From IMG/VR virus record IMGVR_UViG_3300017991_005548, positions 124,001 through 188,000 of that record: 64,000 bases of DNA, one strand, 5' to 3'. Below, piece after piece: positions 2,999 to 61,416 of this stretch. The notes beneath the pieces are model-generated. The model was not told the DNA's origin and ran no database searches. It saw only the letters and a list, made by a program, of their open reading frames with translations. Every line of letters starts with the position of its first letter. The first letter of the stretch is position 1. A program made the position numbers and the translations under genes.

Positions 2999-3026
2999 AT
3001 TATAGCCAGCAATCCGCCGACTACAA
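2999..3026 (-). promoter_or_regulatory. Possible sigma70-type promoter for the phosphoesterase gene
   Basis: Minus strand reads TTGTAG-N16-TATAAT just upstream of the RBS/ATG at 2966. Confidence 0.4.
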
Positions 3027-3674
3027 GCAAAAATACGAAAATTCAACAAAACCCATTTCCTCAGGTACATTTTCATATCTAACAACAAACCCATTTTCGA
3101 GCAATTCATAGACATAAAGTCTTGGAAAATCGAATGGGCCTGGATACTCGTTTGAAGTTGTGCTACTGTCACTACTTAAAGATTGGCTTGAACTACTGGA
3201 TGAGTCTTTTGAGCTAGAACTGGACGTACTGTCTGAACTAGGAGTATCTTCGCTACTGGTGCTGGAAGAATCTAATGAGCTTGAACTAGAGGAATACTCT
3301 TGTGAGCTTGAACTAGGAGATCCTAAGCTACTTGAAGAAGATTCGCTTGCCTCTGTTGAGCTACTACTGCTTGATGAGTCTTTTGAGCTTGAAGAACTGG
3401 ATTCAGTAGAAAGTGAAATTGAAGTAAGACTGGATTCAGAAGTTGGGCTTGATGAGCTTGATGAAGATATTCCCCCTATTGATAAACTTGATTCACTAGA
3501 AGAACTATATTCAATAGCTGGATTATAAATAGGTATAGAGGCCCATGTGATAATGGCACTCGTTATAGGATAACCAGTTATGATAGTAATATATCCATCT
3601 CCTGAACCAGCGTAAGCCTTCTTTCCTGTCAGGGGATAGTTATCAGATCTTCTTAAATCGTATCGTCTTATCAT
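3021..3674 (-). CDS. Small putative virion protein: beta-rich domain interrupted by a ~120-aa Ser-rich tract
   Basis: ATGA overlap with the upstream giant gene. Beta-strand-like N- and C-terminal parts (YITIITGYPITSAIITW / LYVYELLENGFVVRY..FSYFC) flank a poly-Ser tract. Confidence 0.75.
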   Translation of the reverse strand: MIRRYDLRRSDNYPLTGKKAYAGSGDGYITIITGYPITSAIITWASIPIYNPAIEYSSSSESSLSIGGISSSSSSSPTSESSLTSISLSTESSSSSSKDSSSSSSSTEASESSSSSLGSPSSSSQEYSSSSSSLDSSSTSSEDTPSSDSTSSSSSKDSSSSSSQSLSSDSSTTSNEYPGPFDFPRLYVYELLENGFVVRYENVPEEMGFVEFSYFCL

Positions 3675-6600
3675 TCTGGTAGCCTTTTGCTTATTGGAAC
3701 GTTTATAATAGTTCCATCACTTGACCTCGGAATCCTTTTGGAAATATTATACATTACTCCAATATGATGGATAACTGCGACCTCATCAGTGAAATTTGTT
3801 ACTCTTGTTGCGACTCTGAATGATGACGCAAAGAACAAATCCATAAATATAGTTGTCGATGGGTCCTGTGGAGCCAAGAATGTAATCGTCCCTTCAATAT
3901 TATTGGCCGCGTATTCTGAAGAATCAATCAAAGTCCCTTGAGTCTCATCCAGTCCAAGTCTATAAACATTCAGTGTAAAGTTTGCATTCCATCGACCATT
4001 AACAGCCGTATAAGTTTTGAAATCTTCTGTTTGTAATAATTCATTAAACCTTGTGGGCAATATCGTATGTTGATCTGGAATGATGTTATAGTACTCTTCT
4101 GGTCTCAAGGATTCACTTTGAGTCATAAGGTATTCTACAGTAGAGTTCTCTGGGACATCTGCTTCGCTAGTTATATGAATTGAAGAAATGTATTCGTCAT
4201 CGTCCAAGTTCACTGAGATTGGTTTGAAGAAAATAACGAATTCTCTTGGGTTGTAATAATCAACTTCTACTCCACCGTTAATTACTGGGGTTTGGAAATC
4301 AGAGTTTCCAACGAGTTTGATCTCATATTGAATATATTTCTGCAAAGCATCAATTGACTTGTCATGTTCATAAGGAATTGAATAGTCAATGAAGTCAGTC
4401 CAGTCAGAATATGTAATCCCATCTACACTAGTTCTTATTCTGTAGGTTACTTCTGCTCCTGTAGGAACGGTAACTCCCGCTATTACAGTAGTGTCTGGGA
4501 TATTGGGATTCTCAAAGACAATCGTCCCAGTAAGAGTTGTTGTGTTAATTTGTAAATTATTCCCTGATGCGATCTCATTACAAATACTATTTATTTGGGC
4601 TGAAGTGCTGTTATCTAAGTAGAATACAGACGATCCTCCCTCCTCTCCATATTTCTCAAGCAAGATAGAGTCAGATGCATGGGGTTGCCCTAATTGAATC
4701 GGAATTATCTGAACTTCACCCTCTCCATCAACAAAGTTGACAGTTTGTACAGCTTGATTTAAAGAATTCTCGGATGTATTCTCGTCGCCATCTGTGACAA
4801 TGATTACAAATTTCTTATAGTCTTTGTAATCTTCGTTATTTGTTTGATATTGGACCAATTGCTCTGCGGCTCTTTTTACTGCATCATGCAATTGACTTGC
4901 ACCAAAGAAACCAAATGAATCGATTGCAGAGGCCAAGTAGATATCATCACTTGTTAACTCTGGGACTCTATGTCTAATGGATGGATACCATTGTTGAATA
5001 CTGGCCACATTGATGATGAATTGTCTTTCGGAAAGATAACCATCAGACGTTGCAGAAACTCTGGCCTTAATATGCATGTAATCTCTTTTTACTCCTGCTC
5101 CCATTACCAAGAATCCAGGATCAGTTCCTTCTTCGTCTTCTGGTGGTTTGTATGGAAGTAGTTCAACAGTAATACGAGATCCATCAGTTACAATCTCTTC
5201 TGGTACGACAATTACATTCCCGATATCGTCAACGTACTGATACTCAGGGAACTTCGCATAAACACGAATATCAAAACCTCTTTCAGTTTCTTCGATATCG
5301 GTAGCAGTATAGAATGTTGCGGACGTATCTTCACTTCCAGCAGGGCCAGCAACTCCTGATTGAGATGAAGCTTCTTCTTCGTCCTCATAATCTAATATAA
5401 AGATTGGTTCACCATTATTAAGGTCGTTCCCCAATTCTATCTTAGTAGCAAGTCGTCTTGCCAATTCAGTTCCAGCAGGCACTTCGAGCGTAGCAAACAT
5501 CATTCTGTTGCCTTCTGGATTCACAGGTTCATTTTCATATGGTTGCGAATTTGTGGGATCGTATCTAACTGTTCCATTTACAACAAAGTCTGTATCAATA
5601 TTCTTTGTTGGAAGAATGTTCGTCATGGCAACACATCTGACATTATGAGAGTGACTTAACTGCTCATCTGATTCATAGCTGGTAAACGTATGAGTATGAT
5701 TGCCAATTGAGCCGAACAAATTAATCGTACTTGTCGTAGTGCCATTCCCATTGATATCTAAGCTAATTACATGAGTGTGACTGCTTACTACTTCACCTCC
5801 GCTATCTTCGTCATATACGTCTGAACGAATTAAACCAGACTGAACAGAATAGTCAGACAAAGAAATGTCTTGGTTGGGACCGACAATCAAACAACCATCA
5901 ATCAGGTTTCTTGTATCCTTCATCTGAGGTAACTGTCCACCAGAAGCATTACTCTCTTCGCAAATTCCACTTTCAAATGTCACTTTTGGCAATGGATACT
6001 CTATTACTGACTCAAAATCGGTTCCCTCATTAATTGTGAGTTGATTGAGAATTGGTTGGCCTTTCCAAGTCAATTCAGCATAGATTCTTGCAGTAGTAAC
6101 TCCATCTCTGACAAAATTAGTCTCATATTTTAGCTCAATACCAAGGGGTTCCACATATTGTTGTAGTGGTTTTGGAATTCTAATGCCACCACCAGGAGTG
6201 GGGAGTGGCCTTCCATTGGCGATTTCTCCTCTTCTGTATCCCCCTTCTTCCTTTCTGTAAGAGGTATATGCTTCAACCTGACTTAACCAAGGCTCTCTAA
6301 AGATCTCACGTTCTCCAAGAGGTTGCTGATGTCCAATATTTTTGTTTTTAGGAATGGCTGTTAACTCAAGCCTATCTGTTTGCCAAGTGGACCTTCTAGG
6401 GTTTGAATTGAATGTTGTTAAAGTTCTTGGTAAATCATTCGGTTGTCCCAAACCTCTAAGCCTTTTTACACCATCCTCTCCAACGAAAATGTCAGTTGGG
6501 TTGAAGTCATCTTGTAAATCCACTACAATTTTTGCGTTTGGATTACTTTCTCCATCAGCGTAGATAGGTGTCAGAGCGTCTTTTGCATAAAAAATGAATG

Positions 6601-9600
6601 AATCATCCTCATCTCCAAAGTTCTGACCAGTCAAGCTAACGATCCTTCTAACTTTTCTTACATATCCAGATGGATGGAAAACTTCAATATCTACATTAAC
6701 ATCCACAATTGGAGGGCAAAGTTCTGCCGCCGCCGCACCCGCTTCCCTTGGTTCAACTGGCTCTATTGGCCCAATGAATACCCCTCCAGCCCAACCATTA
6801 TCAGTAACACTTGAGCTTGGCTCAACATTAAATTGTTTGGCTGATCTAAAAGAGAAGTTTACTTGGACGTTATCTTCAACAACTTCACTAGCGTCAAGAT
6901 ATTCCACGCCAGTCCCTATCTCATAAACTTCATTTTCAGCAGGGACCAAAACGCCTGGATTTACAGAAGTTATAGTAACTGGATTCGCTATGAAGAACAT
7001 ATCTGCTAATATTTGCTCATGTTGATCTCTGTCCCCAAACGATACAGAAGCTTCGATAAATAACAAGGAAACAATATCACTCGTTGGTATTGTTATAGAG
7101 GCTTTGCCATTAACTATTTCTAAAGAGAATTGATACTGCTCAAACTGTTTGGCATATGTCCATTCTGCTGGATCTTGATAGAAAAGTCCGCTTTCTTCCT
7201 CAGTATCTTGTTGAACAGATCCACCAACAAGTTCAATGTATTGATTAATGATGTCATTTGCGTTAGTAGATCTGAGTCCAGTTCCAGAACTTGCACTTGG
7301 TGCGCTATCCGTCTCATTAACAGATTCAAGAACTTCTTCGAACGGATTGTTTTGAACTATTTCTCTCCATTGATCGATAGCTGTTTTGGGTGTTTCCACA
7401 GGCTCCCCATTTTCATCAACAGCCACATTTTCCAATGGTCTTATATTAGCAAATTGTTGAGTTGTTGGATATGAAGAATCTTTATAAACAACATTTGATG
7501 CTGTTGCATCCAAATCAATCACTCTATTTGTATACAGAGTTATATTAATGAATTGATCGTTAGCTAAAACAAACTCATCAGCCACAATATAATTAAGAGT
7601 AATTGTACTGCCATCAGAAGCATGATATCCTCTAACATACCTTTTCTCATATCGTGGAAAACAATCTAAGCTATCTTCATCTTTTGGAGCGGCTAGATAA
7701 TATTGGACCCGATCTGATTCAACATAAGTACTGTCAATAACAATAGGGGAAATAAAAGAAACTTCAAATGGATCTAGATACAATCTAGCAAGAGTCCTCC
7801 CAGTTTCACCCATAAAATCGGCATATGCGAAAATCTCATAATCTTTCGAGAAGAATAAAGGATTTTCTATGCCAGGGATATTCAGCCCTTCAAAAGTTTT
7901 CTCCTCATATTCAGTGGCAAAACTCTGCATAGATGACGTAGCCAAACCATTAGAGGTATATATTGGAGTTTCGATTACATAATCGACATCTTCTTCTGTG
8001 GCATCAGTTTCTTCAGCAGTTGGTAATTCTGTGGCCGTTTCTTGATCCCCATCATTTTGCTCTAATTGAGCTACAATATCCGTTTCAGGAGAGTATCTGA
8101 GTAATCGACTTAAATCTTCTTCTTTGTCTTTTACTGTTTCCAATATATCTTCAACAATAGGAAGTACCCTTGCACAAACGTTACCATCAACAGTTGGCAT
8201 ATCAAGAGTTTGCCTCTGAGTAAATTTTTCTGCAAGATTCAAATCTTCATAAGGAGTTGATGGTGGAACTCTGTCGATATCATATGGTTTTAATAATGAT
8301 GGATCAACATCTTTGTCATTAACAATTGGAGTCACATCAACGCTAAGTATCTCTGTCGCAAGAATATTATCTGTTGGAGTTAACTTCTCATCTGACGATT
8401 CGTTAAGTCTTATGGTTGTTCCCAATTCAGCAGAAACATCAAACAAAAGTGGATCGACAATATCAATGTATGGCCCAAGATTTGGATCAGTTCCAATCTC
8501 ATCAATTTTGGTTGTTTGGATGTTACCTGATTTATCTAGAATATCAATAATACTTTCTCTGAAATACCCCTCAGTAGATTGTACATAAATTCTTTTTTGG
8601 CCAGCAAACGATGGGTATGTTACAAAGGCTGATTCTATTTTGTCTTTTGCAAAAATGTCTGGCTCTTTATCAACTAACAAATTGACTTCTGTTCCGTCAG
8701 GGAACGGAGTTCCATCTTTCTCAAAGAAACTCATTGGAAGAAGGGCTGTCTGCCCAAAGAAGAAGATGTTATAACTCACCCATTCACTAAATGCTTCGAA
8801 ATCCCACTCTAAATAGTAACCATCTGAATTCTGCAAATAAAAGACGACATCTCTTGAGACCTTAGTATCTCTAACAAGGATGTTTGCGGTTGATCCGTTA
8901 ATGTTTGTTATTTTGTTATAAGAACTGTCTTGAACAATACTGCCAGCTAAACTATTATTTGTGACAGCGAGGCGCACACCAGGATCGAAGGTTATTGTAT
9001 TACTATCAATCTCTGTGATTGTATGGCCAATATTAGCGGCATCCCCTTGTAAGATATCTATTACATCTCCAACTTCAAAATCAGAAGCGTCTTCAACTGT
9101 TACAGTTGTGTCTCCAACATACAAAATGCTAGTAATATTGCTTTGCGTTATTCCTGCATTTGTTAGTAGCTTTCTGGAGATAAGATTTGTAGATGCAACG
9201 ATATCTATGGACTCTTCATTATTTGGGGCATTATTCCCAAGAGTAATTGAAGGAGATTCACTGCCAGGATAAAATAACTGCCAATTAGTAAGATTTACAT
9301 CACTAATAACATTGAAGTCAACTTTGAAATCTCCAATATTGTATGTATGGTTATTTTCAAGAGTCTTAAATCCATAAGCAATCATGGGATCTTCAACAGA
9401 AACAGCAGTAACTGATGAGAAATCTATTGTCGCATCACCAGTTCCAGAAACCAGATTCAAAGTCCCACTATCAATTGGACTAGTGTTACCATATGTAATT
9501 AAAGAAATCTGATCACTTTTTAGCTTATGTTGAACCGTAAACTCAGCACCATTATTCTCATAAACAGCGTCAACATCAGCCTGAGAACCCGAAACATCAA

Positions 9601-11587
9601 AGATGTAAGTTGTTCTACTTGGGTTATTCAGGTCTAGGTTAATCGTTGCGAATGTCCCAAGTCCTGCTGTAATAGTGGATACATCAACATCAGAACCCCC
9701 GAAGGTGAACATATCAAACTTTATGTCAGACGGATAGTAGGTTTTAAATCTATTTACTAAGCACTCAACGATGTTTTGTCGGTTGTTGTATCTGTCCATC
9801 ATCCCCATACTTCCAGAACTATCTACAACAAATGAGAGTATTGCATCAGAGTACTCAATTTCACCATCAACAATGTCATCTTCAATGGTTATCGGGTCTG
9901 TGGCAGGAGGTGTTGTTATAGTACTGTTTCCTGGATCGAAAGGGTCAAAGTTACCAACAACTCTTAAAGCAAAAACGGAATTGTAAAGGTCTTCCCAAGT
10001 AGTCTCATCTTTACTTGTCCATGCAAAAGTGTCTGAATCAGCATTTTTCTCATCATATGCCCATAATACAAAATTATCTTCATCTCCATTGTGGCGCAAT
10101 GTGATGGAAAGATATCCATTACTAGGAGTTGTTTCATCCATTAAATCGAAATCGAACGCATACCAATCGTCTTTAACAATTGTTGAGGCATGAAGTGAGG
10201 CCAAATGGAGTTCGCTTTTAGGAGTCCCATCATCATAACAGTCAGATATGGACATCCTTATCCAATAATTTGATGTTCCTCTTGCCCTGTACAAGAATAC
10301 ATAAACCTTACCAATACTGTATTCCGAATCATAGACTTTGAATGTTTGTGCAAGTCTATTTCTTATGTTTGGGTTGGCCGCAGAAGACAAACCTAATAGC
10401 AATGGTTTTGTTTGGTTCCAAAAGAGACCCGAACTAGAAGAGCTTGAGGAAACATTTGCTTCACTTTCACTACTGGTACTGGAAGAATCAATACTTGAAC
10501 TACTAGAGGTTGAATTACTTGTTGGACTGGATGAAGAAGAGTTTGACTGTGAACTTTCCGATTGAGAACTATGCCCAAGGCTTGAAGAAGATGAGCTTGA
10601 ATCAAGAGAACTTGAACTAGAAGAGCTACTTGTTGTAACTGTGCTGGATGAGTAACCACCCGAATCAGAAGAGCTTGAATCAAGAGAACTTGAACTACTG
10701 CTAGAACTTGAGCTAAATTGGTTACAAGATAGGGCTAAGGTATTCGGAAATGGCAATAGGGTTCCATCCCAGTCAACTGTACCAGATAATCCACTATTGT
10801 TTTGTTCAATAAGAGTTATTGTTCCTGCGCCAGTCCTTTGACCGACAGCTATTAAGTTGATTAAGCCAACCTCCCTATAAACTCTGACCTGTTGAATTGC
10901 TCCTTGGACAAACAAACCAACATACATATTGCAATTGGTAGTGTTTCCATCTCCCATCCCTGAAAAAGTCCAGTTTGTGAAGTAAGCACAATTGCCCCCT
11001 TCGCAGAATGGACTTGTACAACATTGGGAGCTACTTGAGCTTGGAGATTGAGTCGATTGACTGCTTGTACTTGAAGAATCAATAGAGCTAGACGAACTAG
11101 AGGTGCTTCTGTCGATACAATATATTATGCCTGAATAAGAGAAGTCAAGTGGAGTCCCATCCCAATTTACTTGTCCAGTTATCCCGCTATTATCTCTTTC
11201 TTCAAGATCTATATCTGAGGCTACCAATGAAGTAACTTGCCCCAAAGCTATGATATTAAAATATGTTGGGTCTTGGTATAGTTCAACCTGCTGAGTGTTA
11301 GTTGCTGGGAAGAACACCGTTCTTACATAAATAATTTCATAATCAAGACTTACCCCAATAAGATTCCACCCAGTTAGATGAGCACAAGCAGTTCCTTCGC
11401 ATTCTGGGTATTGACAGTATCCCGAACTACTAGAGCTTGAGGAAGAGTCTATACTCGAAGATGAGCTACTAGAAGTAGAAGAAGAATCTATACTCGAAGA
11501 TGAGCTACTAGAAGTAGAAGAAGAATCTATGCTCGAACTCGAACTTGAACTTTCGCTATATTGAAAACTTGAACTTGAACTTGACAT
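3671..11587 (-). CDS. Giant (2638 aa) tail appendage/adhesin-like structural protein with Ser-rich N-terminus, two Cys modules, a split vWA (MIDAS) domain and an HxH triad
   Basis: vWA motifs FVVDSSGSM (~aa 588) and GASQLHDAV...VIIVTDGDEN (~aa 2230-2270). Duplicated C..P.CEG..CA..T.W...QQV..Y...IA.GQ...NSG..G.V.WDG module. HTH/HTH/HSH triad. Lies within the tail-gene block. Confidence 0.8.
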   Translation of the reverse strand: MSSSSSSFQYSESSSSSSSIDSSSTSSSSSSSIDSSSTSSSSSSSIDSSSSSSSSGYCQYPECEGTACAHLTGWNLIGVSLDYEIIYVRTVFFPATNTQQVELYQDPTYFNIIALGQVTSLVASDIDLEERDNSGITGQVNWDGTPLDFSYSGIIYCIDRSTSSSSSSIDSSSTSSQSTQSPSSSSSQCCTSPFCEGGNCAYFTNWTFSGMGDGNTTNCNMYVGLFVQGAIQQVRVYREVGLINLIAVGQRTGAGTITLIEQNNSGLSGTVDWDGTLLPFPNTLALSCNQFSSSSSSSSSSLDSSSSDSGGYSSSTVTTSSSSSSSSLDSSSSSSSLGHSSQSESSQSNSSSSSPTSNSTSSSSSIDSSSTSSESEANVSSSSSSSGLFWNQTKPLLLGLSSAANPNIRNRLAQTFKVYDSEYSIGKVYVFLYRARGTSNYWIRMSISDCYDDGTPKSELHLASLHASTIVKDDWYAFDFDLMDETTPSNGYLSITLRHNGDEDNFVLWAYDEKNADSDTFAWTSKDETTWEDLYNSVFALRVVGNFDPFDPGNSTITTPPATDPITIEDDIVDGEIEYSDAILSFVVDSSGSMGMMDRYNNRQNIVECLVNRFKTYYPSDIKFDMFTFGGSDVDVSTITAGLGTFATINLDLNNPSRTTYIFDVSGSQADVDAVYENNGAEFTVQHKLKSDQISLITYGNTSPIDSGTLNLVSGTGDATIDFSSVTAVSVEDPMIAYGFKTLENNHTYNIGDFKVDFNVISDVNLTNWQLFYPGSESPSITLGNNAPNNEESIDIVASTNLISRKLLTNAGITQSNITSILYVGDTTVTVEDASDFEVGDVIDILQGDAANIGHTITEIDSNTITFDPGVRLAVTNNSLAGSIVQDSSYNKITNINGSTANILVRDTKVSRDVVFYLQNSDGYYLEWDFEAFSEWVSYNIFFFGQTALLPMSFFEKDGTPFPDGTEVNLLVDKEPDIFAKDKIESAFVTYPSFAGQKRIYVQSTEGYFRESIIDILDKSGNIQTTKIDEIGTDPNLGPYIDIVDPLLFDVSAELGTTIRLNESSDEKLTPTDNILATEILSVDVTPIVNDKDVDPSLLKPYDIDRVPPSTPYEDLNLAEKFTQRQTLDMPTVDGNVCARVLPIVEDILETVKDKEEDLSRLLRYSPETDIVAQLEQNDGDQETATELPTAEETDATEEDVDYVIETPIYTSNGLATSSMQSFATEYEEKTFEGLNIPGIENPLFFSKDYEIFAYADFMGETGRTLARLYLDPFEVSFISPIVIDSTYVESDRVQYYLAAPKDEDSLDCFPRYEKRYVRGYHASDGSTITLNYIVADEFVLANDQFINITLYTNRVIDLDATASNVVYKDSSYPTTQQFANIRPLENVAVDENGEPVETPKTAIDQWREIVQNNPFEEVLESVNETDSAPSASSGTGLRSTNANDIINQYIELVGGSVQQDTEEESGLFYQDPAEWTYAKQFEQYQFSLEIVNGKASITIPTSDIVSLLFIEASVSFGDRDQHEQILADMFFIANPVTITSVNPGVLVPAENEVYEIGTGVEYLDASEVVEDNVQVNFSFRSAKQFNVEPSSSVTDNGWAGGVFIGPIEPVEPREAGAAAAELCPPIVDVNVDIEVFHPSGYVRKVRRIVSLTGQNFGDEDDSFIFYAKDALTPIYADGESNPNAKIVVDLQDDFNPTDIFVGEDGVKRLRGLGQPNDLPRTLTTFNSNPRRSTWQTDRLELTAIPKNKNIGHQQPLGEREIFREPWLSQVEAYTSYRKEEGGYRRGEIANGRPLPTPGGGIRIPKPLQQYVEPLGIELKYETNFVRDGVTTARIYAELTWKGQPILNQLTINEGTDFESVIEYPLPKVTFESGICEESNASGGQLPQMKDTRNLIDGCLIVGPNQDISLSDYSVQSGLIRSDVYDEDSGGEVVSSHTHVISLDINGNGTTTSTINLFGSIGNHTHTFTSYESDEQLSHSHNVRCVAMTNILPTKNIDTDFVVNGTVRYDPTNSQPYENEPVNPEGNRMMFATLEVPAGTELARRLATKIELGNDLNNGEPIFILDYEDEEEASSQSGVAGPAGSEDTSATFYTATDIEETERGFDIRVYAKFPEYQYVDDIGNVIVVPEEIVTDGSRITVELLPYKPPEDEEGTDPGFLVMGAGVKRDYMHIKARVSATSDGYLSERQFIINVASIQQWYPSIRHRVPELTSDDIYLASAIDSFGFFGASQLHDAVKRAAEQLVQYQTNNEDYKDYKKFVIIVTDGDENTSENSLNQAVQTVNFVDGEGEVQIIPIQLGQPHASDSILLEKYGEEGGSSVFYLDNSTSAQINSICNEIASGNNLQINTTTLTGTIVFENPNIPDTTVIAGVTVPTGAEVTYRIRTSVDGITYSDWTDFIDYSIPYEHDKSIDALQKYIQYEIKLVGNSDFQTPVINGGVEVDYYNPREFVIFFKPISVNLDDDEYISSIHITSEADVPENSTVEYLMTQSESLRPEEYYNIIPDQHTILPTRFNELLQTEDFKTYTAVNGRWNANFTLNVYRLGLDETQGTLIDSSEYAANNIEGTITFLAPQDPSTTIFMDLFFASSFRVATRVTNFTDEVAVIHHIGVMYNISKRIPRSSDGTIINVPISKRLPE
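11448..11525. repeat. Perfect 39-bp tandem duplication (codes SSTSSSSSSSIDS-type unit)
   Basis: tctatactcgaagatgagctactagaagtagaagaagaa occurs at 11448-11486 and 11487-11525. Confidence 0.9.
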
Positions 11588-19131: not shown

Positions 19132-19140
19132 AATTTATCC

Positions 19141-30147: not shown

Positions 30148-30158
30148 TTGATTACTCC

Positions 30159-30599: not shown

Positions 30600-30609
30600 A
30601 GTTTTCTCC

Positions 30610-43377: not shown

Positions 43378-43595
43378 TCTGCAACCACATCATTTTGTCC
43401 CCATTGACTTGCGCCAATGATAAAGACATCTTCATTAAGTTTAGCGTCCGTTACATTACCTTGTGATAAATCAGATATAGGGTGATCATAAAAAGTCAAT
43501 GAGCCAGTATCAATGGTCTGTCCAAAGCCACCACCATCGAATGCTTGTTGCCCTTGCCTGATTGTAGTTACTAAATTTTGCCAATTAACATTCAT
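43374..43595 (-). CDS. Small hypothetical tail-tip protein
   Basis: 73-aa ORF that fills the gap exactly, with an ATGA overlap to the next gene. Confidence 0.65.
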   Translation of the reverse strand: MNVNWQNLVTTIRQGQQAFDGGGFGQTIDTGSLTFYDHPISDLSQGNVTDAKLNEDVFIIGASQWGQNDVVAE

Positions 43596-43598
43596 AAT

Positions 43599-46301: not shown

Positions 46302-46309
46302 AATAACTC

Positions 46310-53600: not shown

Positions 53601-56600
53601 ACAGAATCCATTAACTGAGTTACACCCATCTCCTGGGTTCCGATGATAGCCTCAAACTCCCCAGCACCGAACGACATCTCTCTCAAAGCGTCAAGATAAC
53701 CTTCACGTATATCTTTTGTTAGTTCATAGATTTTATTTTGAGCGCTTAAAGATTTTTGTTGCAAGTCATTGAAGTCACCTATTTGTTTATTAAGGATACC
53801 ATGAATCATTCGACGTTTATTATCTGTGACACCCATTTCTTTAAGAGTAGCCAGCCCTTGGCCAAGAGCCGCTTGTATACCTTCTGTGGTGTCTTGATTC
53901 TTTGCGGCATTAAACGTAGAGAGCATGATCATCTTAGCCCTTTCTCGCTCTTCCTTCGTTAAGCCTTTCATGATCTTTTCATCTGAGACTTCGATGGCAA
54001 CTCGTTGATCCTGAAGCTGTATTTGTTCTTGAATCGCTTTAATATTATCGTATGACAAATTTACTTGTTTCTGCATCATCTGAATTGATGCACCCATACC
54101 AAATTGAGCATTTTCCATCAAAGTTCTTTCAGTATCCAACCTGGATTCCAATACTGAATTCATTTTCAAATGCTCGTCAACCGCTCCTCTAATAACTTTA
54201 CTAACTGCGTCTGCCGCTGTTTTCTGATTATCGATAACTGTCTTCTGTTGCTCTGCTATTTTAAGAACTTCTGTTGTTAGACTTCGACGCATGAGTTCGT
54301 TAGCATTCAACTCATCCATCTTCTTCTTGACAGCATCTAAGTCATTAATCTGTTTCGCCGCTTGAACATCAAGCTCTAACTGAATACCTTCTTCTCCAAG
54401 TTGTCGGATTCTATCCTCGATAGCTGAAACAGCTTCATCCAGAGTCCCTAGACGATTTTTATCAACTCCAAGGCCAATCATAATTTCTCTTCTGGCCCCT
54501 AATACTTCATCCAAGTATCTCTGTGCTTCTTCTGTTTCTTTTAAAATAACTTGGAATGCTTCACTATATGCCTCTGATGCTTGTTTGGAAGTCATAACAA
54601 ACATTTCGTTTAATGCGTCGATTTGTGAGTAAATAACATCCCTCTGAGAAGCTAACAATTTGAGGTTTGCTTCATGAGTTTTCTTAATTCTTTCCCATCT
54701 TTTGAGCATTTCTCCAAGAGTATCTGACTCATCTTTGATCCCTGTGAGTGAACCAGTTCTGAATTTTTTTCTACTTCGTTGATCAGCCTCCTCATTCTTC
54801 TTTTTTTCTAGTTCTTCTCTATTAATGGCTTCTGAAATCTTTTGACCAACAATACCGCCAATAGTAGCTCCAATCATTGTCCCCGCTGGGCCAGCCAAAG
54901 ATCCAAGCAATCCACCAACAATAGCCCCACCGCCAGCGCCGACACCAGAAACAGCACTTCTTCTTAAGGAATCCCCTTTGTCAAACCCTGCACTTCTAGA
55001 TCTTGAATATTCCCCCATCCCACTCATGACAGCCCCAATCACTGCCATTGGGATGGCCATCTTCATTCCTGCCATCATTTGAGAGCCTGCACCCCCTGCG
55101 CTTCCCGCTCTCATTCCAGCGCCTGCTTCTTGCCCACCTCTTCTTAGAGCGGATCTGACATATTCCGAATTTCTTCTATCTGCGATCCTTCTGCCTCTAT
55201 TGGCAATTTGATCACCCCTTATTCGTCTATTGGCCCCTTGCTCAATGGTGTCTGTCCATCTTCTTGCAGACTCTTCAAAGGCATCTGCTCTACTTCTAGT
55301 TGCAGAGGCTACCGCAGAAGCGGCTCTCCCAGCCCCTCCTCTTCCTCTACCAGCAGAAGCGACACCTTCACCAGCCCTTCCTATGGCATCACTTACATCT
55401 TCTGTCTTATCTCTTATTTTTTCTAATGAATCAAGCCAAATCTCAAATCTTTTGGGCACTTTACCAATCTGACTAGCGATGCCTGTTCCCATAAGTGTGG
55501 TCAATGCTTGGAACGCACCAACAACCAGAAATACCTTTTCTGGCAGACTATTCATATATTCCAGTACTTTGGACATACCCTCTGCAATGGTTTTTATATG
55601 AGGTTCAAGAGCTTGCCCCATCTTCAATACAGCATCTGCACTTTGTTGTTGTACTTTGGCTACTGACTTATTGGTTTGTAGAAGATCTTGCTCTTTTTGG
55701 TTGGTTTCTGTAGTATATTTTAAGAGACGTTCTCTTTGTTGAGCACTCATGTTCCCATATTCACCAGCAACCGCCAATGACGTTCTTAGAACCTTCAACC
55801 TTTCTCTTGCTCCTGCGGCCTCATCTTTATCACCAGTTCTGATCTCCTCCATAACCTTACTGACTTCCATCATAGCATCTAAAGCAGGAGGATAGCTCTC
55901 AAAAACACCTAACAAATCTTGAGCGACTTCTTTGGCAACTTTTACATTAGGTCCGAACTGTGTTTGAAGGATCTTCGCGAATTGAGCTATCTGTTGAACA
56001 GTAGGAGTCATTCCAACATAACCAGAAGCAACACTTTGAGCAAAATCAACGAATTCTTTTTTGGAGAAACTTGTCTCTTTGCTGACATATCGCATGGTGT
56101 CGGCCATATTTTTATTGCCAACCCCGAATACTTTATATGTCCTTTCCAAATCATAAAGAGACTGGTTGTACTCAAGAACACTATTCATTGCATTCCCGAT
56201 AGAGAATGTCTGAGCGCCAAATGCTCCAAGGAATTTATTAAACTCCGCGCCAGCGGCCCTCATTGCACTTTGCATTTTGTGAAGTGCTTTTATGTTGTCT
56301 TTAATTTTCTCAGAATAAGTTCTAGATTCTTTGGCTATTTTTTCTTTTGCTAAGGCATGCCTTTTTTCTTCAATCCTTGCTTCTTTGGTTTTCTTAATGC
56401 TTTCTTTGATAGCATTGAGTTCTTTTATAATACTTTCCCGACTTCTATCAGTGAGTTGGCTATTTCTTCCTTTTTCTTCAGCCTCTTTTCTTATAGCTTT
56501 GATAGCTTTGTCAATATTACCAGACATACGTCCGTAACTAATCAAAGTGTCTTCAACAGTCTTGTGTAATTCATTTTGAGCTTCGGCACTTTTCTTGGAT

Positions 56601-56860
56601 TGAGATCTAATAGACTCCAGGGCTTCTTTGTATTTTTTGAAAGCACTATCTACATCTTTTACGGACTTGATGAAGTCTTTGAGTTTATCTTCACTCATAC
56701 CGAGAGATTTTGCAAAATCCTTAAGATTTTTTTCGGCCTCTTTAGTGTTTAAGGAAAGACTGGCGGCTCTTTTAAGAGCTTCAATAAAGTTATTCAACTG
56801 AGTCATTTGCTCAGGAGTAACAACCAAATCTTCTATAAAATCTCGTGAAATGTCTGCCAT
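50627..56860 (-). CDS. Tape measure protein (2077 aa)
   Basis: Long helical/coiled-coil composition; Gly-zipper hydrophobic segment GAGGGAIVGGLLGSLAGPAGTMIGATIGGIVG; downstream of the tail tube and frameshifting chaperone. Confidence 0.88.
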   Translation of the reverse strand: MADISRDFIEDLVVTPEQMTQLNNFIEALKRAASLSLNTKEAEKNLKDFAKSLGMSEDKLKDFIKSVKDVDSAFKKYKEALESIRSQSKKSAEAQNELHKTVEDTLISYGRMSGNIDKAIKAIRKEAEEKGRNSQLTDRSRESIIKELNAIKESIKKTKEARIEEKRHALAKEKIAKESRTYSEKIKDNIKALHKMQSAMRAAGAEFNKFLGAFGAQTFSIGNAMNSVLEYNQSLYDLERTYKVFGVGNKNMADTMRYVSKETSFSKKEFVDFAQSVASGYVGMTPTVQQIAQFAKILQTQFGPNVKVAKEVAQDLLGVFESYPPALDAMMEVSKVMEEIRTGDKDEAAGARERLKVLRTSLAVAGEYGNMSAQQRERLLKYTTETNQKEQDLLQTNKSVAKVQQQSADAVLKMGQALEPHIKTIAEGMSKVLEYMNSLPEKVFLVVGAFQALTTLMGTGIASQIGKVPKRFEIWLDSLEKIRDKTEDVSDAIGRAGEGVASAGRGRGGAGRAASAVASATRSRADAFEESARRWTDTIEQGANRRIRGDQIANRGRRIADRRNSEYVRSALRRGGQEAGAGMRAGSAGGAGSQMMAGMKMAIPMAVIGAVMSGMGEYSRSRSAGFDKGDSLRRSAVSGVGAGGGAIVGGLLGSLAGPAGTMIGATIGGIVGQKISEAINREELEKKKNEEADQRSRKKFRTGSLTGIKDESDTLGEMLKRWERIKKTHEANLKLLASQRDVIYSQIDALNEMFVMTSKQASEAYSEAFQVILKETEEAQRYLDEVLGARREIMIGLGVDKNRLGTLDEAVSAIEDRIRQLGEEGIQLELDVQAAKQINDLDAVKKKMDELNANELMRRSLTTEVLKIAEQQKTVIDNQKTAADAVSKVIRGAVDEHLKMNSVLESRLDTERTLMENAQFGMGASIQMMQKQVNLSYDNIKAIQEQIQLQDQRVAIEVSDEKIMKGLTKEERERAKMIMLSTFNAAKNQDTTEGIQAALGQGLATLKEMGVTDNKRRMIHGILNKQIGDFNDLQQKSLSAQNKIYELTKDIREGYLDALREMSFGAGEFEAIIGTQEMGVTQLMDSVKGVTGIDFLNTMALGGYTIQGSEASKARMAAPSKYTIGGFQAGAFAGAQVDDIFGYGRSAQAFQQHMMGKGAAPTAGYIGDNREHENTKGAILEQNINKQGFMESEFSRALHTWSGGGNNLQSVKIDVRTGEGGKGAPGQERRTRRGANTVTAFAGAVAGGSRGTTPEATNVFAPSAAPGPMGIPPVMLRQMQKDPKMQGLLKYSQEISNKMTELNDSGRNDSKTLKSLQKEQVKVSKAIVRRQRDIAKGFSGASQTLSDGSMHWGVDVKQFLSWGGHRGPMEGAPAPATGPTRKPAAKPVTGGATPKGGTATATSEIKKLSREQEYIMSTQIESWNQLDARMNEFKGVEAQAIASLAMNIQSSMKNAEENSYEMMGLEYSMGTAIKELRKRDSRMAETIQSQIVKEEMNHLDNLIKEGNLNAYTISKSTERLAKSLGMTEDEIIKKVHAVSENATELMKAHKEVAVSMSSGSKKQEDMSKAIRMGEALSIKRGSLVGTAQERMHVLLQKGEGQDKRSAIAAQAEYVFEELMKEEVFRSKSLKEQEAEFRDIMASVMGYTDDKEAIAHGKAKVSKIIRKNRQDRAEKRKKASAEAIRREEEYMDKVDAEYRKRKGIPEPGSQQSRRVKKEPAKQAQGPQFKKGIEWEDFLTKAEKGKLSRSKGIRLATARQMGKEAIPEEVKKNVLPKSTKATRPSSKAPTPTPTPTPTPTPVLDRYASVPEDIGTVDLTGPIEKMGVPKIPTASIGQKVMSDEEAREIARKGLAKSRAGRDTRPAGEGVNYLSMPKVNKKLPATPYSQNITRMKELQSKALDRDATSAERAAARSELEKLKGADKSALKWGSTALGGHVRYDPDRQAEAEAEAARVKEREKAYADARANAPESTGGRVPTALGGNQGIIVHRGGKAKPQTPRAVGKGKGGVVRSDIVSDAATQAEYRRSSGREMAGLDGGPSESGGKEVLGELKITLSDKIDAEMTKNSRLRMSFEKMA
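51464..51503. repeat. 12-bp tandem repeat encoding a Pro-Thr linker in the tape measure protein
   Basis: tggagtaggtgt x3, giving PTPTPTPTPTP. Confidence 0.85.
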
Positions 56861-58558: not shown

Positions 58559-58590
58559 TTTTTTCTTTCCTTTTTGTCTTCTGCGCCTTC

Positions 58591-59433: not shown

Positions 59434-60363
59434 TTATGGGGAAGCAGAAAGATCCCAAGGGAATCCAGTCTGATGGGTAACTCCCGTAAATCCAACTGTT
59501 GAAATGACAGGACCCGTATTCAAGGTAGGTTCTACCCTGTGGAATCTAACTTTCATTTCGGTTGTTGAAGATCCACCCGTACAATTACTGCTCAATCCAA
59601 ACTGGAGGGTATGTACTCCGTCTGCACAATAATCTTCGAATGTTTCAGCCCCGTTAAAGTCTGGTGCATTGTAAACAGAAAGCGTTCCAGAGATCTGTCT
59701 GATACCAGGAACAATATCGAATGGGAACAAGTCAGCTTGACCCAAACCATATACTGTTTCAATGTTGTTGTTCACGGTGAATTCGAAATTACTGAATTTA
59801 ATATCAGTCAAAACGGCAGGGATGTCGTTATTTACTGGGTCAGTTGCACCGCCAGCAATGATTGTGACGTTGACTTTATCCCAAGTAAGCAACTTTTCCG
59901 CATCAGTGAAGTGAGGTGGAGGATTGGAACCAAACGCATTTGCGCTTGTACCAATAACATCCAAAGAAAACTGAGCAACTTCACCAGCCGCTACTGAAAA
60001 ATTGAAAGTATTTACAAAGAGGTTTTCAAACAATCTGTCTCTGCTACAGAAGTAATAAAGCTGGATATCTTTAGTACTGAGACCACCACAAGCATCGCCT
60101 GCGTCATCTCTACCAGCGGCCCATTGGATCACGCTGTCTGTTCCAGATAGAAATGTTTCGGTGACGGGTCCGCTAATGCTTCCGCCAACCTCGATTTTAC
60201 CGTATACGTAGGCATCCCTGTCCCAGTCACCTGAAACAAGGTCGGGTGCCTCGATTTCTTGTCTTGCAGTGATATTAGCATCGGAGAATCGGAGTTGAGT
60301 ACCACCGATATCTGCAATACCTCTATAACCTGCATTTACTAAACCATTAGCTCCTATTGACAT
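59434..60363 (-). CDS. Major tail (tube) protein, siphovirus-type
   Basis: VGGSISGP, FNFSVAAGEVAQFSLDVIG and FSNFEFTVNNNIE...GIRQISGTLSV patterns. Strong AAGGAGA RBS, own promoter motif and terminator. Precedes the chaperone and tape measure. Confidence 0.8.
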   Translation of the reverse strand: MSIGANGLVNAGYRGIADIGGTQLRFSDANITARQEIEAPDLVSGDWDRDAYVYGKIEVGGSISGPVTETFLSGTDSVIQWAAGRDDAGDACGGLSTKDIQLYYFCSRDRLFENLFVNTFNFSVAAGEVAQFSLDVIGTSANAFGSNPPPHFTDAEKLLTWDKVNVTIIAGGATDPVNNDIPAVLTDIKFSNFEFTVNNNIETVYGLGQADLFPFDIVPGIRQISGTLSVYNAPDFNGAETFEDYCADGVHTLQFGLSSNCTGGSSTTEMKVRFHRVEPTLNTGPVISTVGFTGVTHQTGFPWDLSASP

Positions 60364-60468: not shown

Positions 60469-60822
60469 CTAAAATGCCATAGGTGCCCTGTACGACACTC
60501 CACTGCTGTATAAATCGGCGGCGTGACCATTGACATAATCGTACAAATAGTCCTCTATCATATCATTAATATCTGTATACGCAGAGGCCGTATCGGTTCT
60601 TCTCTGCTTAACACCATTCAAGACCAATTCATCCAAACTCATAACCAAAAGTTCAGGAAGATTAACTCCATCAGTATCTCTTGCGCTTGTTCTAATCCTG
60701 AAGTAATAGCTTACCTCAGAAATAAAAGTACCAGCACTTTGTGCGAGAATATTACCTAAGAAATCAACATTAATCGTTCTGGTGTTGTTAGCTGTCTCAT
60801 CATATATTCTAAATGTGGCCAT
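60469..60822 (-). CDS. Small putative virion protein, paralog of 60835-61416
   Basis: MATFRIYDE..TRTINV..IL..Y..IRTS.R..DG...P aligns with MATVQIFHE..TSTVSV..IL..Y..ISTS.R..DG...P. AGGAGG RBS. Confidence 0.75.
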   Translation of the reverse strand: MATFRIYDETANNTRTINVDFLGNILAQSAGTFISEVSYYFRIRTSARDTDGVNLPELLVMSLDELVLNGVKQRRTDTASAYTDINDMIEDYLYDYVNGHAADLYSSGVSYRAPMAF

Positions 60823-60834
60823 TCTCTTTCCTCC

Positions 60835-61416
60835 TTAAGCAGACGAACTGCTTGACTCAGATTGAGAACTCATACTCTGAGAACTCATACTCTGAGAACT
60901 ATCACTTTGAGAACTATCAGACTGAGAACTCATACTCTGAGAGCTACTAGATTCACTTTGTGAACTTTCAGATTTTGAACTCATACTCTGCGAACTCATA
61001 CTCTGCGAACTCATGCTTTGAGTACTTGAGCTATTACTTTGTGAGCTTCCAGATACTCCACCAGAACTACTTGAACTTTCTGAGTAATTTTCAGATGAAG
61101 TCGAGCTTTCTGATTGACTGGATGAACTATCACTTGAAGACTGACCATATTCTGCTTGATCAACAAAATATTCAATCCAACCATTAACCAACTCTGTGAA
61201 GTCAGCGGCAGGTGAGGAGGCTCCAGGAGCCACATCAGCCAAATCTTTAATTAAATAGGTAGGAAACGTAGATCCATCAACCTTCCTGATACTCGTAGAT
61301 ATAAGAAGATATGAATCTCTCGTCATCAAACCATCAGACAATATGGCAGTCTGCAAATTTACAGATACTGTCGAAGTACTGCCATCTTCTTCATGAAATA
61401 TTTGAACAGTTGCCAT
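60835..61416 (-). CDS. Small putative virion protein with a free ~100-aa C-terminal Ser tract
   Basis: Folded ~90-aa N-terminal domain followed by a Ser tract that runs to the stop codon. Confidence 0.8.
   Translation of the reverse strand: MATVQIFHEEDGSTSTVSVNLQTAILSDGLMTRDSYLLISTSIRKVDGSTFPTYLIKDLADVAPGASSPAADFTELVNGWIEYFVDQAEYGQSSSDSSSSQSESSTSSENYSESSSSSGGVSGSSQSNSSSTQSMSSQSMSSQSMSSKSESSQSESSSSQSMSSQSDSSQSDSSQSMSSQSMSSQSESSSSSA
60863..61015. repeat. 15-bp tandem repeats (SQSMS/SQSDS)
   Basis: tgagaactcatactc and tgcgaactcatactc units. Confidence 0.85.

Follow-up and report, generated by a model that had tools for sequence, protein, structure and literature searches.

We found that a very large uncultured phage carries long serine-rich tracts in more than forty fibre-like proteins, and that in other phages such tracts are tied far more strongly to a set of sugar-transferase genes than to the sulfotransferase encoded among them, so that the likely coat is a sugar-decorated, mucin-like brush and not a tyrosine-sulfated one. 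We give this reading, in which every chemical step is inferred, a probability of roughly 0.5.

Serine tracts and the tail module

We analyzed a window of 64,000 nucleotides (the whole stretch of DNA under study) together with the 296-kb phage record from which it comes. An earlier note had described Ser/Glu/Asp tracts with an aromatic-SESS punctuation in eight putative virion genes surrounding a sulfotransferase gene. This observation was confirmed and in fact understated: all eight ORFs (minus strand) carry tracts at the places described, as do 30610-33663 and the end of 61502-62560 (short tracts), with Ser tracts counted in nine window ORFs. The 28 ORFs of the window hold 92 runs of four or more Ser, against 10.8 +/- 2.9 (maximum 21) when each protein is shuffled. 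Across the record, tracts occur in 44 ORFs and are thus not confined to the tail block, accounting for 6,942 of 91,552 residues (7.6%) with a composition of 61% Ser, 12% Glu and 6.7% Gln and almost no Lys, Arg or His, and including a 4,276-aa protein with 3,232 tract residues. To assess the punctuation, we shuffled residues within tracts: genome-wide, [YF]SESS occurs 67 times in 16 proteins against 4.2 expected, G[YF]S[ES]SS 42 times against 0.9, and [LI]DSSS 26 times against 1.2. However, the commonest residue before SESS is Gln (358), followed by Tyr (45), Lys (43), Glu (42) and Phe (22), and Tyr and Phe are depleted in tracts, at 0.36 times their frequency outside. The tract proteins, described in the note as otherwise non-homologous, in some cases share domains (FG-GAP in 24935 and 34494, a Kre9/KNH Ig-like domain in 22147 and 30610).

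The tracts are selected protein features. All six Ser codons are used in the same proportions as outside tracts, adjacent identical Ser codons occur at 0.158 against 0.229 expected, and tract positions are conserved in orthologues from L022, a close relative of different GC content. Tracts flank Laminin_G_3, FG-GAP, Ig-like, LRR, DUF285 and BclA_C-like modules.

The block is a tail module, as the note had proposed, with all genes below on the minus strand. A 193-aa protein between the head and tail genes (60835..61416) has a C-terminal Ser/Gln/Glu/Met tract of 106 residues (nt 60838-61155) underlain by a 15/45-nt tandem repeat. It is followed by the tail tube protein (59434..60363; Pfam Phage_tube_2, PF18906, 1.2e-11; phrog_290, 7.8e-14), a tape measure protein of 2,077 aa without tracts (50627..56860; phrog_167, 6e-18; glycine zipper) and four distal-tail or baseplate-size proteins (39010..50571; 512, 907, 900 and 1,455 aa) without tracts or family matches. 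Next come a 785-aa fibre-like protein with 201 tract residues (36646..39003; nt 37213-37389 and 37414-37839), a 712-aa FG-GAP repeat protein with two tracts (34494..36632; FG-GAP_2, 1.4e-23; nt 36363-36485 and 34968-35093), a 1,017-aa protein with BNR-like and Ig-like (Kre9/KNH) domains and one short tract (30610..33663; nt 32569-32619), and two small ORFs of 245 and 166 aa (29410..30659) just upstream of the sulfotransferase that are conserved only in L022. Immediately downstream of the sulfotransferase (28257..29348), a 1,091-aa FG-GAP protein (24935..28210) has two tracts (nt 27113-27322 and 25955-26122) carrying G-F/Y-SESS punctuation. It is followed by an 812-aa protein with a Kre9/KNH Ig-like domain (22147..24585), whose 71-residue N-terminal tract (nt 24373-24585) sits at the same position in the L022 orthologue, and by a 1,001-aa protein (19141..22146) with a ConA-like lectin domain (Laminin_G_3), a 255-residue SESSSSQ-type tract (nt 19909-20673), a short tract (nt 21358-21429) and an LRR-like C-terminus. 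The remaining genes encode a 2,513-aa beta-propeller-type giant protein with essentially no tracts (11590..19131), a 2,638-aa protein (3671..11587) whose first ~390 residues alternate Ser tracts (nt 11405-11587, 11006-11122 and 10412-10735) with two homologous Cys-containing modules of about 100 aa, and a 217-aa protein that is 37% Ser, with a 125-residue central tract (3021..3674; nt 3147-3521). The tracts sit in lectin- or adhesin-like giant proteins.

The sulfotransferase and its link to tracts

The 363-aa product of 28257..29348 matches Sulfotransfer_1 at 27.3 bits (cut-off 22) and Sulfotransfer_3 at 26.6 bits (cut-off 27). Its catalytic domain spans residues 12-240 and is followed by a conserved five-Cys C-terminal domain (about residues 280-350). 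We retrieved 443 homologues; in 37 homologues, GCPRSGTS and RxPRxVAKSQE of the PAPS-binding site are invariant or nearly invariant. The AF2 model has a pLDDT of 90.5, and the enzyme looks catalytically intact. The family is phage-specific, with only 1 relative found in 185,579 bacterial and archaeal species genomes, and is usually encoded in tail modules beside fibre genes, with a tape measure gene 4-6 kb upstream in six loci.

The earlier note interpreted the block as a virion-surface modification system in which this enzyme sulfates Tyr, Ser or O-glycans on the tracts, an interpretation that our comparisons support only in part. To check whether the enzyme and the tracts co-occur, as the note had suggested doing, we compared sulfotransferase loci with control loci from unrelated large phages. 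Tract ORFs lie near 8 of 33 sulfotransferase loci, against 6 of 79 control loci (p=0.026), are directly adjacent in 7 of those 8, and occur in at least 3 separate branches of the sulfotransferase tree. However, 25 of 33 loci have no tract ORF within 10 kb and none of 5 tract-bearing control phage records has the enzyme, which is therefore neither necessary nor sufficient for tracts. We also looked for the other genes the note had asked about: glycosyltransferase genes exist in abundance elsewhere in the genome, whereas no PAPS-synthesis genes and no Pkinase-type protein kinase are encoded.

A glycan island and a transferase module

A stronger partner for the tracts is a roughly 27-kb glycan island about 85-96 kb from the sulfotransferase (record coordinates about 28-54.6 kb). 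It encodes a NeuB-like synthase (8e-33; best NCBIfam match PseI; short, 233 aa), a cytidylyltransferase (7e-19; best match PseF), a GT2 enzyme (5.8e-29), several GT1/4 enzymes, a GT32-like enzyme, six methyltransferases and a second sulfotransferase (Sulfotransfer_3, 77 bits). No multi-pass membrane protein was found, and hence no flippase or polymerase.

The island includes a conserved three-transferase module comprising a double GT-A protein, a GT2-like protein and a Maf/CstII-like putative CMP-ulosonic-acid transferase. All three assignments are weak: the Maf-like gene matches PF01973 at 1.2e-5, below the gathering cut-off, its family profile hits the CMP-sialic-acid transferase CstII at only E 0.005, and its Atlas neighbours (MptE-like/WaaZ families) serve as leads only. 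The partner genes look like GT8-type and GT2-type GT-A enzymes. Of 20 loci with the double GT-A gene, 17 also carry the Maf-like gene and 16 the GT2-like gene. A tract ORF of at least 40 residues lies within 10 kb in 15 of 20 loci (12 of 16 clusters at 60% identity, GC 0.27-0.62), against 6 of 79 control loci (Fisher p = 2.7e-9 by loci and 4.7e-8 by clusters), although the control loci are not tail modules, so part of the enrichment could reflect the position of fibre genes. Four Maf-like and four GT-A lineages have no tract ORF within 10 kb, and three phages (G001-G003) have tracts and the sulfotransferase but no detectable module. In the genome under study, the module lies about 115 kb from the sulfotransferase and about 4 kb from the nearest tract gene. 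In one other phage locus (L056) the order is tape measure, tract proteins, then the module, and in a sulfotransferase locus (L049) the sulfotransferase sits between Ser-rich tail proteins and the module. In three further sulfotransferase loci (L023, L024 and L026), glycosyltransferases directly follow the sulfotransferase.

Interpretation and comparison with known systems

In our preferred reading, the tracts are selected, intrinsically disordered, Lys/Arg-free stalks or spacers that present lectin- and adhesin-type modules on the tail, and probably other virion surfaces, of a very large siphovirus-like phage, and most likely serve as acceptors for cytoplasmic O-glycosylation on Ser by the phage-encoded module and island enzymes. 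The product would be a mucin-like or serine-rich-repeat-glycoprotein-like anionic brush. The tail-block sulfotransferase would probably use host PAPS during late infection to sulfate the glycan on a fibre, or less likely the fibre itself, as an optional tailoring step and not as the core of the system, and would not be a tyrosine sulfotransferase aimed at the aromatic-SESS motif. Our analysis establishes the sequences, their conservation and the gene-neighborhood statistics, whereas each chemical step and the presence of these proteins in the virion are inferred, without direct evidence of modification or proteomic evidence.

The leading alternative, which we consider possible but less likely, is that the tracts are unmodified, flexible, protease-tolerant hydrophilic linkers like those of Cellvibrionaceae carbohydrate-active enzymes, and that the island and both sulfotransferases act on something else, such as host envelope glycans or phage DNA. 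Tracts lie between or at the ends of folded modules, 42-46 proteins per genome carry polyserine linkers with no known modification in Teredinibacter and Saccharophagus (PMC2699552), and the tract ORFs at 6 of 79 control loci and in G001-G003, without the module, are in line with this view. Against it stand the neighborhood of module and tracts in 12 of 16 lineages, tracts of 800-3,232 residues with regular SESSSSQ repeats that are far longer than the roughly 40-residue linkers, and the lack in the island of export machinery for a polysaccharide product.

Receptor masking is unlikely. Here the tail-block sulfotransferase would sulfate precursors of a host surface glycan late in infection, preventing progeny or competitors from adsorbing to infected cells and debris, and would sit beside fibre genes because it co-evolves with receptor specificity. 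The enzyme does lie next to fibre-like genes whether or not they carry tracts, receptor-modifying genes beside tail spike or fibre genes are well known in other phages, and PAPS is available only inside cells while the phage encodes no PAPS synthesis. However, the family is almost absent from bacterial and archaeal species genomes and this record has no integrase, so it does not behave like a lysogenic-conversion gene; it is followed by soluble glycosyltransferases with no membrane or export partners, and it carries the conserved Cys-rich extra domain of unknown role.

Tyrosine sulfation of the G-Y-S-E-S-S punctuation by a TPST/RaxST-like enzyme, the leading idea of the earlier note, is very unlikely. 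In its favor, the top Foldseek hits are TPST2 and TPST1, the GxPRSGT(S/T) loop resembles that of TPST, the motif is 16-fold over-represented, Tyr outnumbers Phe 43 to 7 outside the giant protein, and Glu and Gly flank the Tyr with no basic residues nearby. However, the Foldseek match is weak (E about 1e-5, TM 0.27-0.33, 13-17% identity), and a sequence profile aligns only 18 residues to TPST (E 0.2) but about 100 residues to cytosolic sulfotransferases (3e-5). The motif is also lineage-specific: tracts next to the enzyme in seven other loci (L021, L026, L028, L029, L031, L032 and L049) have 0-1.5% Tyr and no such motif, which does occur in two phages lacking the enzyme (L279 and L289). Moreover, the giant protein uses Phe 15 times against Tyr 2, and two Tyr in the N-terminal tract of the 812-aa protein are not conserved in the L022 orthologue. 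Direct O-sulfation of Ser, or its phosphorylation by a host kinase at S-x-E sites to give a phosphophoryn- or polysulfate-like chain, is equally unlikely, since no Pkinase-type gene was found, no bacterial or phage Ser O-sulfotransferase is known to have been described and the enzyme is absent from most tract-bearing loci, even though Ser is the only feature shared by all sulfotransferase-adjacent tracts, the S-x-E and DSS periodicity resembles heavily phosphorylated secreted proteins of animals and a calcineurin-like phosphoesterase domain lies at the end of the block (855-2966).

Tyrosylprotein sulfotransferases (TPST1/2, RaxST) and carbohydrate sulfotransferases (HS 3-OST, NodH, Stf0) share the PAPS-binding fold with its 5'-PSB and 3'-PB motifs, but the phage enzyme, at the low identity and TM given above, has the extra five-Cys domain, is phage-specific and encoded in tail modules, and has an acceptor that cannot be read from its sequence. 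Polyserine linkers of Saccharophagus, Teredinibacter and Cellvibrio enzymes (Howard et al. 2004; PMC2699552) likewise join dozens of multidomain proteins in one genome, often with carbohydrate-binding modules, through runs of about 80% Ser; those linkers average 39-44 residues and are nearly pure Ser, while tracts here reach thousands of residues, carry regular Glu/Gln and G-Y/F punctuation and co-occur with transferase modules. Autotransporter heptosyltransferases (AAH, TibC) O-heptosylate Ser of AIDA-I and TibA (PMC3835316); a GT9 (heptosyltransferase-family) gene follows the sulfotransferase in L023 and L026, directly in L026, and the genome under study encodes a GmhB-like heptose phosphatase fused to a kinase, but no GT9 gene was seen in its island and the link to Ser tracts is only positional. 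Maf flagellin glycosyltransferases with Pse/Leg biosynthesis islands (PMC11339370, PMC7874193) similarly involve a PF01973-type enzyme, a NeuB/PseI-like synthase and a PseF-like CMP-transferase, and carry out cytoplasmic O-linkage of an acidic nine-carbon sugar to surface Ser/Thr of a filament protein before assembly; here the PF01973 match is below the curated cut-off, the synthase is short, the genes belong to a phage and the presumed substrates are poly-Ser tracts, not folded flagellin domains.

In the serine-rich repeat glycoproteins of Gram-positive bacteria (Fap1, GspB, SraP) and the staphylococcal SD-repeat proteins glycosylated by SdgA/SdgB (PMC7661464, PMC6973325, PMC3794999), hundreds to thousands of residues of short Ser-based repeats also form a stalk presenting a binding domain, and are glycosylated in the cytoplasm by soluble glycosyltransferases encoded nearby, including a GT8-type second enzyme. 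The putatively glycosylated phage proteins are tail or fibre candidates without signal peptide, LPXTG anchor or accessory Sec system, more than 40 per genome carry tracts instead of one or two, and the transferase set differs (Maf/CstII-like plus GT-A enzymes), with sulfo- and methyltransferases added. Finally, in mycobacteriophage virion glycosylation (Freeman et al. 2023, cited in PMC11256854 and PMC11652166) and in the self-encoded glycosylation of giant-virus fibrils, the virus encodes its own glycosyltransferases and decorates structural proteins made in the cytoplasm. Those phages reportedly use two transferases next to the capsid and tube genes, acting on short C-terminal extensions, whereas here we found about 25-30 glycan genes, apparently dedicated poly-Ser stalks of up to 3,232 residues, a predicted acidic-sugar pathway and two sulfotransferases.

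Ser tracts in the window and across the record

The window comprises bases 124001-188000 of a 296,327-bp IMG/VR record (GC 38.5%, CheckV completeness 98%) that is labelled a provirus, and all its large ORFs run on the minus strand. In transcription order we found a tail tube protein (59434-60363; PF18906 1.2e-11, phrog_290), a 2,077-aa tape measure protein (50627-56860; phrog_167 6e-18), four large proteins without family matches, and a 36-kb run of giant fibre- or adhesin-like proteins carrying FG-GAP, ConA-like lectin (Laminin_G_3), Kre9/KNH Ig-like, BNR and LRR modules. This is the tail module of a very large siphovirus-like phage, although that the tract proteins are virion parts is inferred from their position and domain type. 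Between the tube and tape measure genes, a 188-aa Glu-rich ORF (58028-58594) contains a 15/30/45-nt tandem repeat (58413-58545) and weakly matches a tape-measure PHROG, and may be a tail assembly chaperone with a repeat. At the far end of the fibre block, a 703-aa protein (855-2966, minus strand) has a calcineurin-like phosphoesterase domain (residues 441-638, 1.6e-9), a second enzyme-like domain next to the tract genes.

The earlier note had listed Ser/acidic tracts in a set of putative virion genes of this block, and every one of them is present. To assess whether such runs could arise by chance, we shuffled residues within each protein: the window's ORFs hold 92 runs of four or more Ser, against 10.8 +/- 2.9 in the shuffles. 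The punctuation is also real, as genome-wide [YF]SESS was observed 67 times, in 16 proteins, against 4.2 expected from within-tract shuffling, G[YF]S[ES]SS 42 times against 0.9, and [LI]DSSS 26 times against 1.2. The aromatic residue is however a minority punctuation: Gln precedes SESS 358 times, Tyr 45, Lys 43, Glu 42 and Phe 22, and Tyr and Phe are depleted about three-fold inside tracts. The tracts are moreover a genome-wide habit and not a tail-block feature, since 44 ORFs of the record carry them, amounting to 6,942 of 91,552 residues (61% Ser, 12% Glu, 6.7% Gln, almost no Lys, Arg or His).

One of these is a 4,276-aa protein (record 261791-274621, minus strand) that is 52% Ser and has 3,232 tract residues, with an NHL-like beta-propeller start followed by thousands of residues of SESSSSQ-type heptads interrupted by small Cys-containing modules. 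It uses Phe and not Tyr in the G-x-SESS punctuation (15 against 2). Outside this protein Tyr outnumbers Phe 43 to 7, so that the possibility that the two residues are freely interchangeable in the motif did not hold up. In the window protein at 3671-11587, two homologous Cys-containing modules of about 100 aa (residues 62-155 and 195-284) are strung between Ser tracts like beads on a string, and small modules similar to these interrupt tracts in the giant protein and in the IMG/VR locus L055. Elsewhere in the record (14524-20104, minus strand) are six tandem paralogues of about 300 aa, each with one short Ser tract, of which the one scanned has a ConA-like lectin domain; they look like an exchangeable set of binding heads, and similar genes are in G004, another large phage that carries the sulfotransferase. 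The record's left edge (1-3798; locus L296 7258-14841) cuts through a further 2,527-aa protein with 1,863 tract residues, and more tract genes follow beyond it. IMG/VR lists a 476-kb region on a 524,692-bp scaffold, and a search of the record found no integrase. The provirus label and the 296-kb size are therefore doubtful, and the phage may be much larger.

Codon usage and conservation show that the tracts are selected protein features. All six Ser codons are used in the same proportions as elsewhere in the genome, neighbouring Ser codons are identical less often than chance (0.158 against 0.229), and only a few tracts are DNA tandem repeats. In L022, a phage with 33% GC whose orthologues are 46-62% identical, tracts sit at the same positions (for example residues 1-71 in both 812/811-aa proteins, and 240-263 and 492-746 against 243-265 and 496 onward), although lengths can differ several-fold. 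Tracts lie at protein ends or between folded modules, which outside the window include Laminin_G_3, DUF285, LRR and a BclA C-terminal-like domain.

The sulfotransferase family and its association with Ser tracts

The 363-aa protein encoded at 28257-29348 has the 5'-phosphosulfate-binding loop GCPRSGTS (residues 17-24) and the 3'-phosphate-binding motif MLRDPRQVAKS (139-149). It scores 27.3 bits against PF00685 (cut-off 22) and 26.6 against PF13469, just under the cut-off of 27, reaching 27.1 with neighbouring matches in frame. A search for relatives yielded 443 metagenomic homologues. In an alignment of 37 of them R141 and S149 are invariant, R20, S21, T23 and S24 are at least 90% conserved, and an NPNGFWE motif, a near-invariant His and five Cys in a C-terminal domain of about 80 residues (~280-350), possibly metal-binding, are invariant or nearly so. 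The same Cys-rich domain occurs as a free-standing 151-aa protein placed exactly between Ser-tract tail proteins and a three-transferase module, described below, in two phages that lack the enzyme (L055 2428-2883; L056 9995-10450).

The AF2 model is confident (pLDDT 90.5), and all top Foldseek hits are sulfotransferases at probability 1.00, with TM of only 0.23-0.34 because of inserts and the extra domain. TPST2 (E 1.7e-5) and TPST1 rank first, but at TM 0.27-0.33 and 13-17% identity, and heparan-sulfate 3-O-sulfotransferase, CurM (2e-4 for both) and cytosolic sulfotransferases follow within one order of magnitude. A sequence profile of the family aligns only 18 residues, in the P-loop, to TPST (E 0.2) but about 100 residues to SULT2A8 and SULT1A3 (3e-5). 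Similarity specific to tyrosylprotein sulfotransferases across the catalytic domain was thus not found, and the acceptor cannot be read from the protein. A complex prediction of the enzyme with a 31-residue tract peptide returned a score of 0.00, which is evidence neither way. APS kinase, ATP sulfurylase and PAPS-reductase/CysD-type families were not found in the record, so PAPS must come from the host; Pkinase families were not found in the record either.

The family is essentially phage-specific, with 34 IMG/VR loci but only one relative in one genome each of 185,579 bacterial and archaeal species. A tblastn search of the sulfotransferase against 50,697 GenBank phage records found nothing, and PHROGs gave nothing for ten proteins around it. 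Five large phages that carry it (G001-G005) share almost nothing else with this genome, the sulfotransferase, at 40-49% identity, being the only protein matched in all five. In six loci a tape measure gene lies 4-6 kb upstream. In seven loci the gene immediately upstream is a fibre-like protein with a conserved C-terminal domain, and in G002 that protein's shaft is replaced by poly-Ser. In the IMG/VR loci L023, L026 and L024 the enzyme heads or adjoins a run of glycan genes (GT9, GT1, pyruvyl transferase, MurB-like, two Methyltransf_24, GT2, a hexapeptide acyltransferase and another sulfotransferase). The conserved context is therefore a tail fibre gene followed by glycan tailoring genes.

The earlier note had proposed co-occurrence of the sulfotransferase with tract genes among related phages as a test. 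To carry it out, we searched for ORFs with at least 40 tract residues within 10 kb of the enzyme, calling ORFs in the fetched loci with a simple longest-ORF rule. Because an alignment of tape measure proteins had no conserved stretch from which tail-module controls could be drawn, we used a CCA-adding-enzyme probe to collect 79 control loci from large phages, which are not tail modules. The record encodes a 675-aa protein (201003-203030, plus strand), for which a terminase assignment was considered and rejected because its alignment shows a CCA-adding tRNA nucleotidyltransferase with an HD domain; it is conserved in G002, G004 and G005 and in more than 300 IMG/VR contigs, while no tRNA gene lies in the window. 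Tract ORFs were found at 8 of 33 sulfotransferase loci against 6 of 79 control loci (L205/L207, L220, L221, L222 and L262; odds ratio 3.9, p=0.026), and when present the tract ORF is the immediate neighbour of the enzyme in 7 of 8 cases. Poly-Ser proteins thus recur in large environmental phages, and the two most complete of these control records have weak hits to the GT-A and Maf-like profiles of the module described below. The tract proteins adjacent to the enzyme belong to different families, and the association needs 3-5 changes on the enzyme's tree.

The association between the enzyme and the tracts is thus real but partial, and is confounded by both genes being fibre-module genes. No tracts were found at 25 of 33 loci, and none of 5 tract-bearing control records has the enzyme. 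The tracts beside the enzyme in seven other phages (L021, L026, L028, L029, L031, L032 and L049) contain 0-1.5% Tyr and no aromatic-SESS motif, and several are not even acidic, being Ser with Ile or Val, or Thr-Ser repeats, whereas the motif does turn up in L279 and L289, which lack the enzyme. Tyrosine sulfation of the motif, one of the modifications that the earlier note had suggested, therefore cannot be the family's conserved job; the case against it rests on this cross-phage comparison.

A glycan island and a three-transferase module

At record coordinates of about 28.0-54.6 kb, 85-96 kb from the window's sulfotransferase, we identified a co-directional island holding a second, more canonical sulfotransferase (PF13469, 77 bits), a NeuB-family synthase (8e-33; best NCBIfam match PseI), a cytidylyltransferase (CTP_transf_3 7e-19; best match PseF), three GT2, four GT1/4-type and one GT32-like transferase, six methyltransferases, and a 436-aa protein with a sub-threshold MptE/Maf match. 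The synthase and cytidylyltransferase, both below the equivalog cut-offs, are encoded about 10 kb from the Maf-like gene. The island also encodes a P-loop kinase fused to a GmhB-like (heptose bisphosphate phosphatase type) HAD domain (53130-54557, minus strand) which, together with the GT9 heptosyltransferase-family gene that follows the sulfotransferase in L023 and L026, hints at heptose chemistry. No protein in the island has more than two hydrophobic segments, so there is no flippase, polymerase or membrane-bound initiating transferase, and a RecD-like helicase marks the island's end. This fits glycosylation of a cytoplasmic target better than export of a polysaccharide.

Homologues of three island genes travel together in other phages. 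The first encodes a 616-aa protein whose look-alikes in the Atlas are GT8-type double GT-A enzymes, the second a 246-aa protein that looks GT2-like, and the third the Maf-like protein. The latter scores 25.5 bits against PF01973, below the cut-off of 34.6, although the source database lists PF01973 for it and for several relatives; its Atlas neighbours are MptE-like/WaaZ families, and a 21-sequence profile hits the CMP-sialic-acid transferase CstII (1RO7) at E 0.005 over about 80 residues. All three assignments thus rest on weak, though concordant, similarities.

Of 20 IMG/VR loci found with the first gene, 17 hold the third and 16 the second. A tract ORF lies within 10 kb in 15 of the 20, often a huge one (1,426, 1,092, 821 or 685 tract residues), or in 12 of 16 clusters at 60% identity, spanning GC 0.27-0.62, against 6 of 79 control loci (Fisher p = 2.7e-9 by loci and 4.7e-8 by clusters). 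Loci found with the Maf-like gene alone show tracts in 54 of 79 cases, or 6 of 10 clusters including this phage's own. In a large lineage of 30-50-kb high-GC phages (L145 9890-12288 and about 45 similar loci, GC 0.58-0.70), a short Maf-like gene is always followed by a protein of about 500 aa made of Ser/Gly tracts around a Hint- or intein-like core (it starts with C and ends with HN). The arrangement is clearest in two loci: in L056 the order is tape measure, three tract proteins, the free-standing Cys-rich domain, then the module, and in L049 it is tape measure, two Ser-rich proteins, the sulfotransferase, then the module. This is the strongest comparative signal that we obtained, and it points to glycosyltransferases as the tract-linked enzymes.

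Interpretation and comparison with known systems

The tracts, their conservation and the gene-neighbourhood counts are results of the analysis, while all function, including sulfate transfer from PAPS, is inferred from these and from what is established for serine-rich repeat glycoproteins, SD-repeat glycosylation and Maf-dependent flagellin glycosylation. In the most likely working, soluble phage transferases would O-glycosylate the Ser stalks of fibre and decoration proteins in the cytoplasm late in infection. An ulosonic acid made and CMP-activated by phage enzymes would cap the glycan, with methyl groups and, in some phages, sulfate from host PAPS tailoring it. The stalks would become extended, protease-resistant, strongly anionic brushes that hold lectin-like heads away from the particle. 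The tail-block sulfotransferase would most plausibly work on the glycan of its neighbouring fibre, and its Cys-rich domain may recognise the protein. We give this composite a probability of about 0.5; that the sulfotransferase acts on virion-bound glycan or protein at all is less likely than not, and Tyr sulfation is very unlikely.

The main alternative is that the tracts are plain polyserine linkers, as in Saccharophagus and Teredinibacter enzymes, whose linkers have no known modification (PMC2699552). A receptor-masking role for the sulfotransferase is also possible, although the near-absence of the enzyme family from cellular genomes and the lack of an integrase in the record speak against a lysogenic-conversion role. 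Direct sulfation or phosphorylation of Ser is a further alternative. A more far-reaching reading, which we consider unlikely on present evidence, is that a self-contained phage pathway builds methylated, sulfated O-glycans capped with ulosonic acid on poly-Ser stalks of more than 40 virion proteins, giving the particle a mucin- or proteoglycan-like polyanionic brush. The three-transferase module would then be a widespread, undescribed phage system dedicated to poly-Ser proteins, and the tail-module sulfotransferase family the first virion-directed sulfation enzyme of a phage.

If the tracts are glycosylated, phages would be shown to build mucin-like glycoprotein coats with their own enzymes, on a scale known so far only from giant viruses and bacterial adhesins. 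That bears on how large environmental phages stick to, or avoid sticking to, mucus, particles, cell debris and host capsules, and on how they evade recognition. Two uncharacterised, mostly phage-borne enzyme families would become testable, namely the three-transferase module and the tail-module sulfotransferase with its Cys-rich domain, and the clear genomic signature (poly-Ser gene plus module) could be used to find such phages. If the tracts are unmodified, the result still extends polyserine linkers from a few marine bacteria to many phage lineages.

Searches of the open literature on polyserine in bacteriophages, on phage or viral sulfotransferases and on pseudaminic acid in jumbo phages found no description of phage poly-Ser proteins, of a phage sulfotransferase or of this transferase module. 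As in serine-rich repeat glycoproteins with accessory Sec, the proteins have long Ser-based repeat regions, with tracts of 17 to 3,232 residues and heptad SESSSSQ arrays, but no export signal, LPXTG anchor, SecA2/SecY2 or GtfA/GtfB was noticed in the ORFs scanned and the proteins lie in a phage tail module, so this is a resemblance in working and not membership. As with the polyserine linkers of Howard et al. 2004, Ser runs lie between or beside recognisable modules in many proteins of one genome (here 44 ORFs), although their length and regular punctuation go beyond the described class. Sulfation of the virion would be a categorically new element and remains unproven, whereas virion glycosylation by phage enzymes is known in mycobacteriophages, and self-glycosylation of fibrils in giant viruses.
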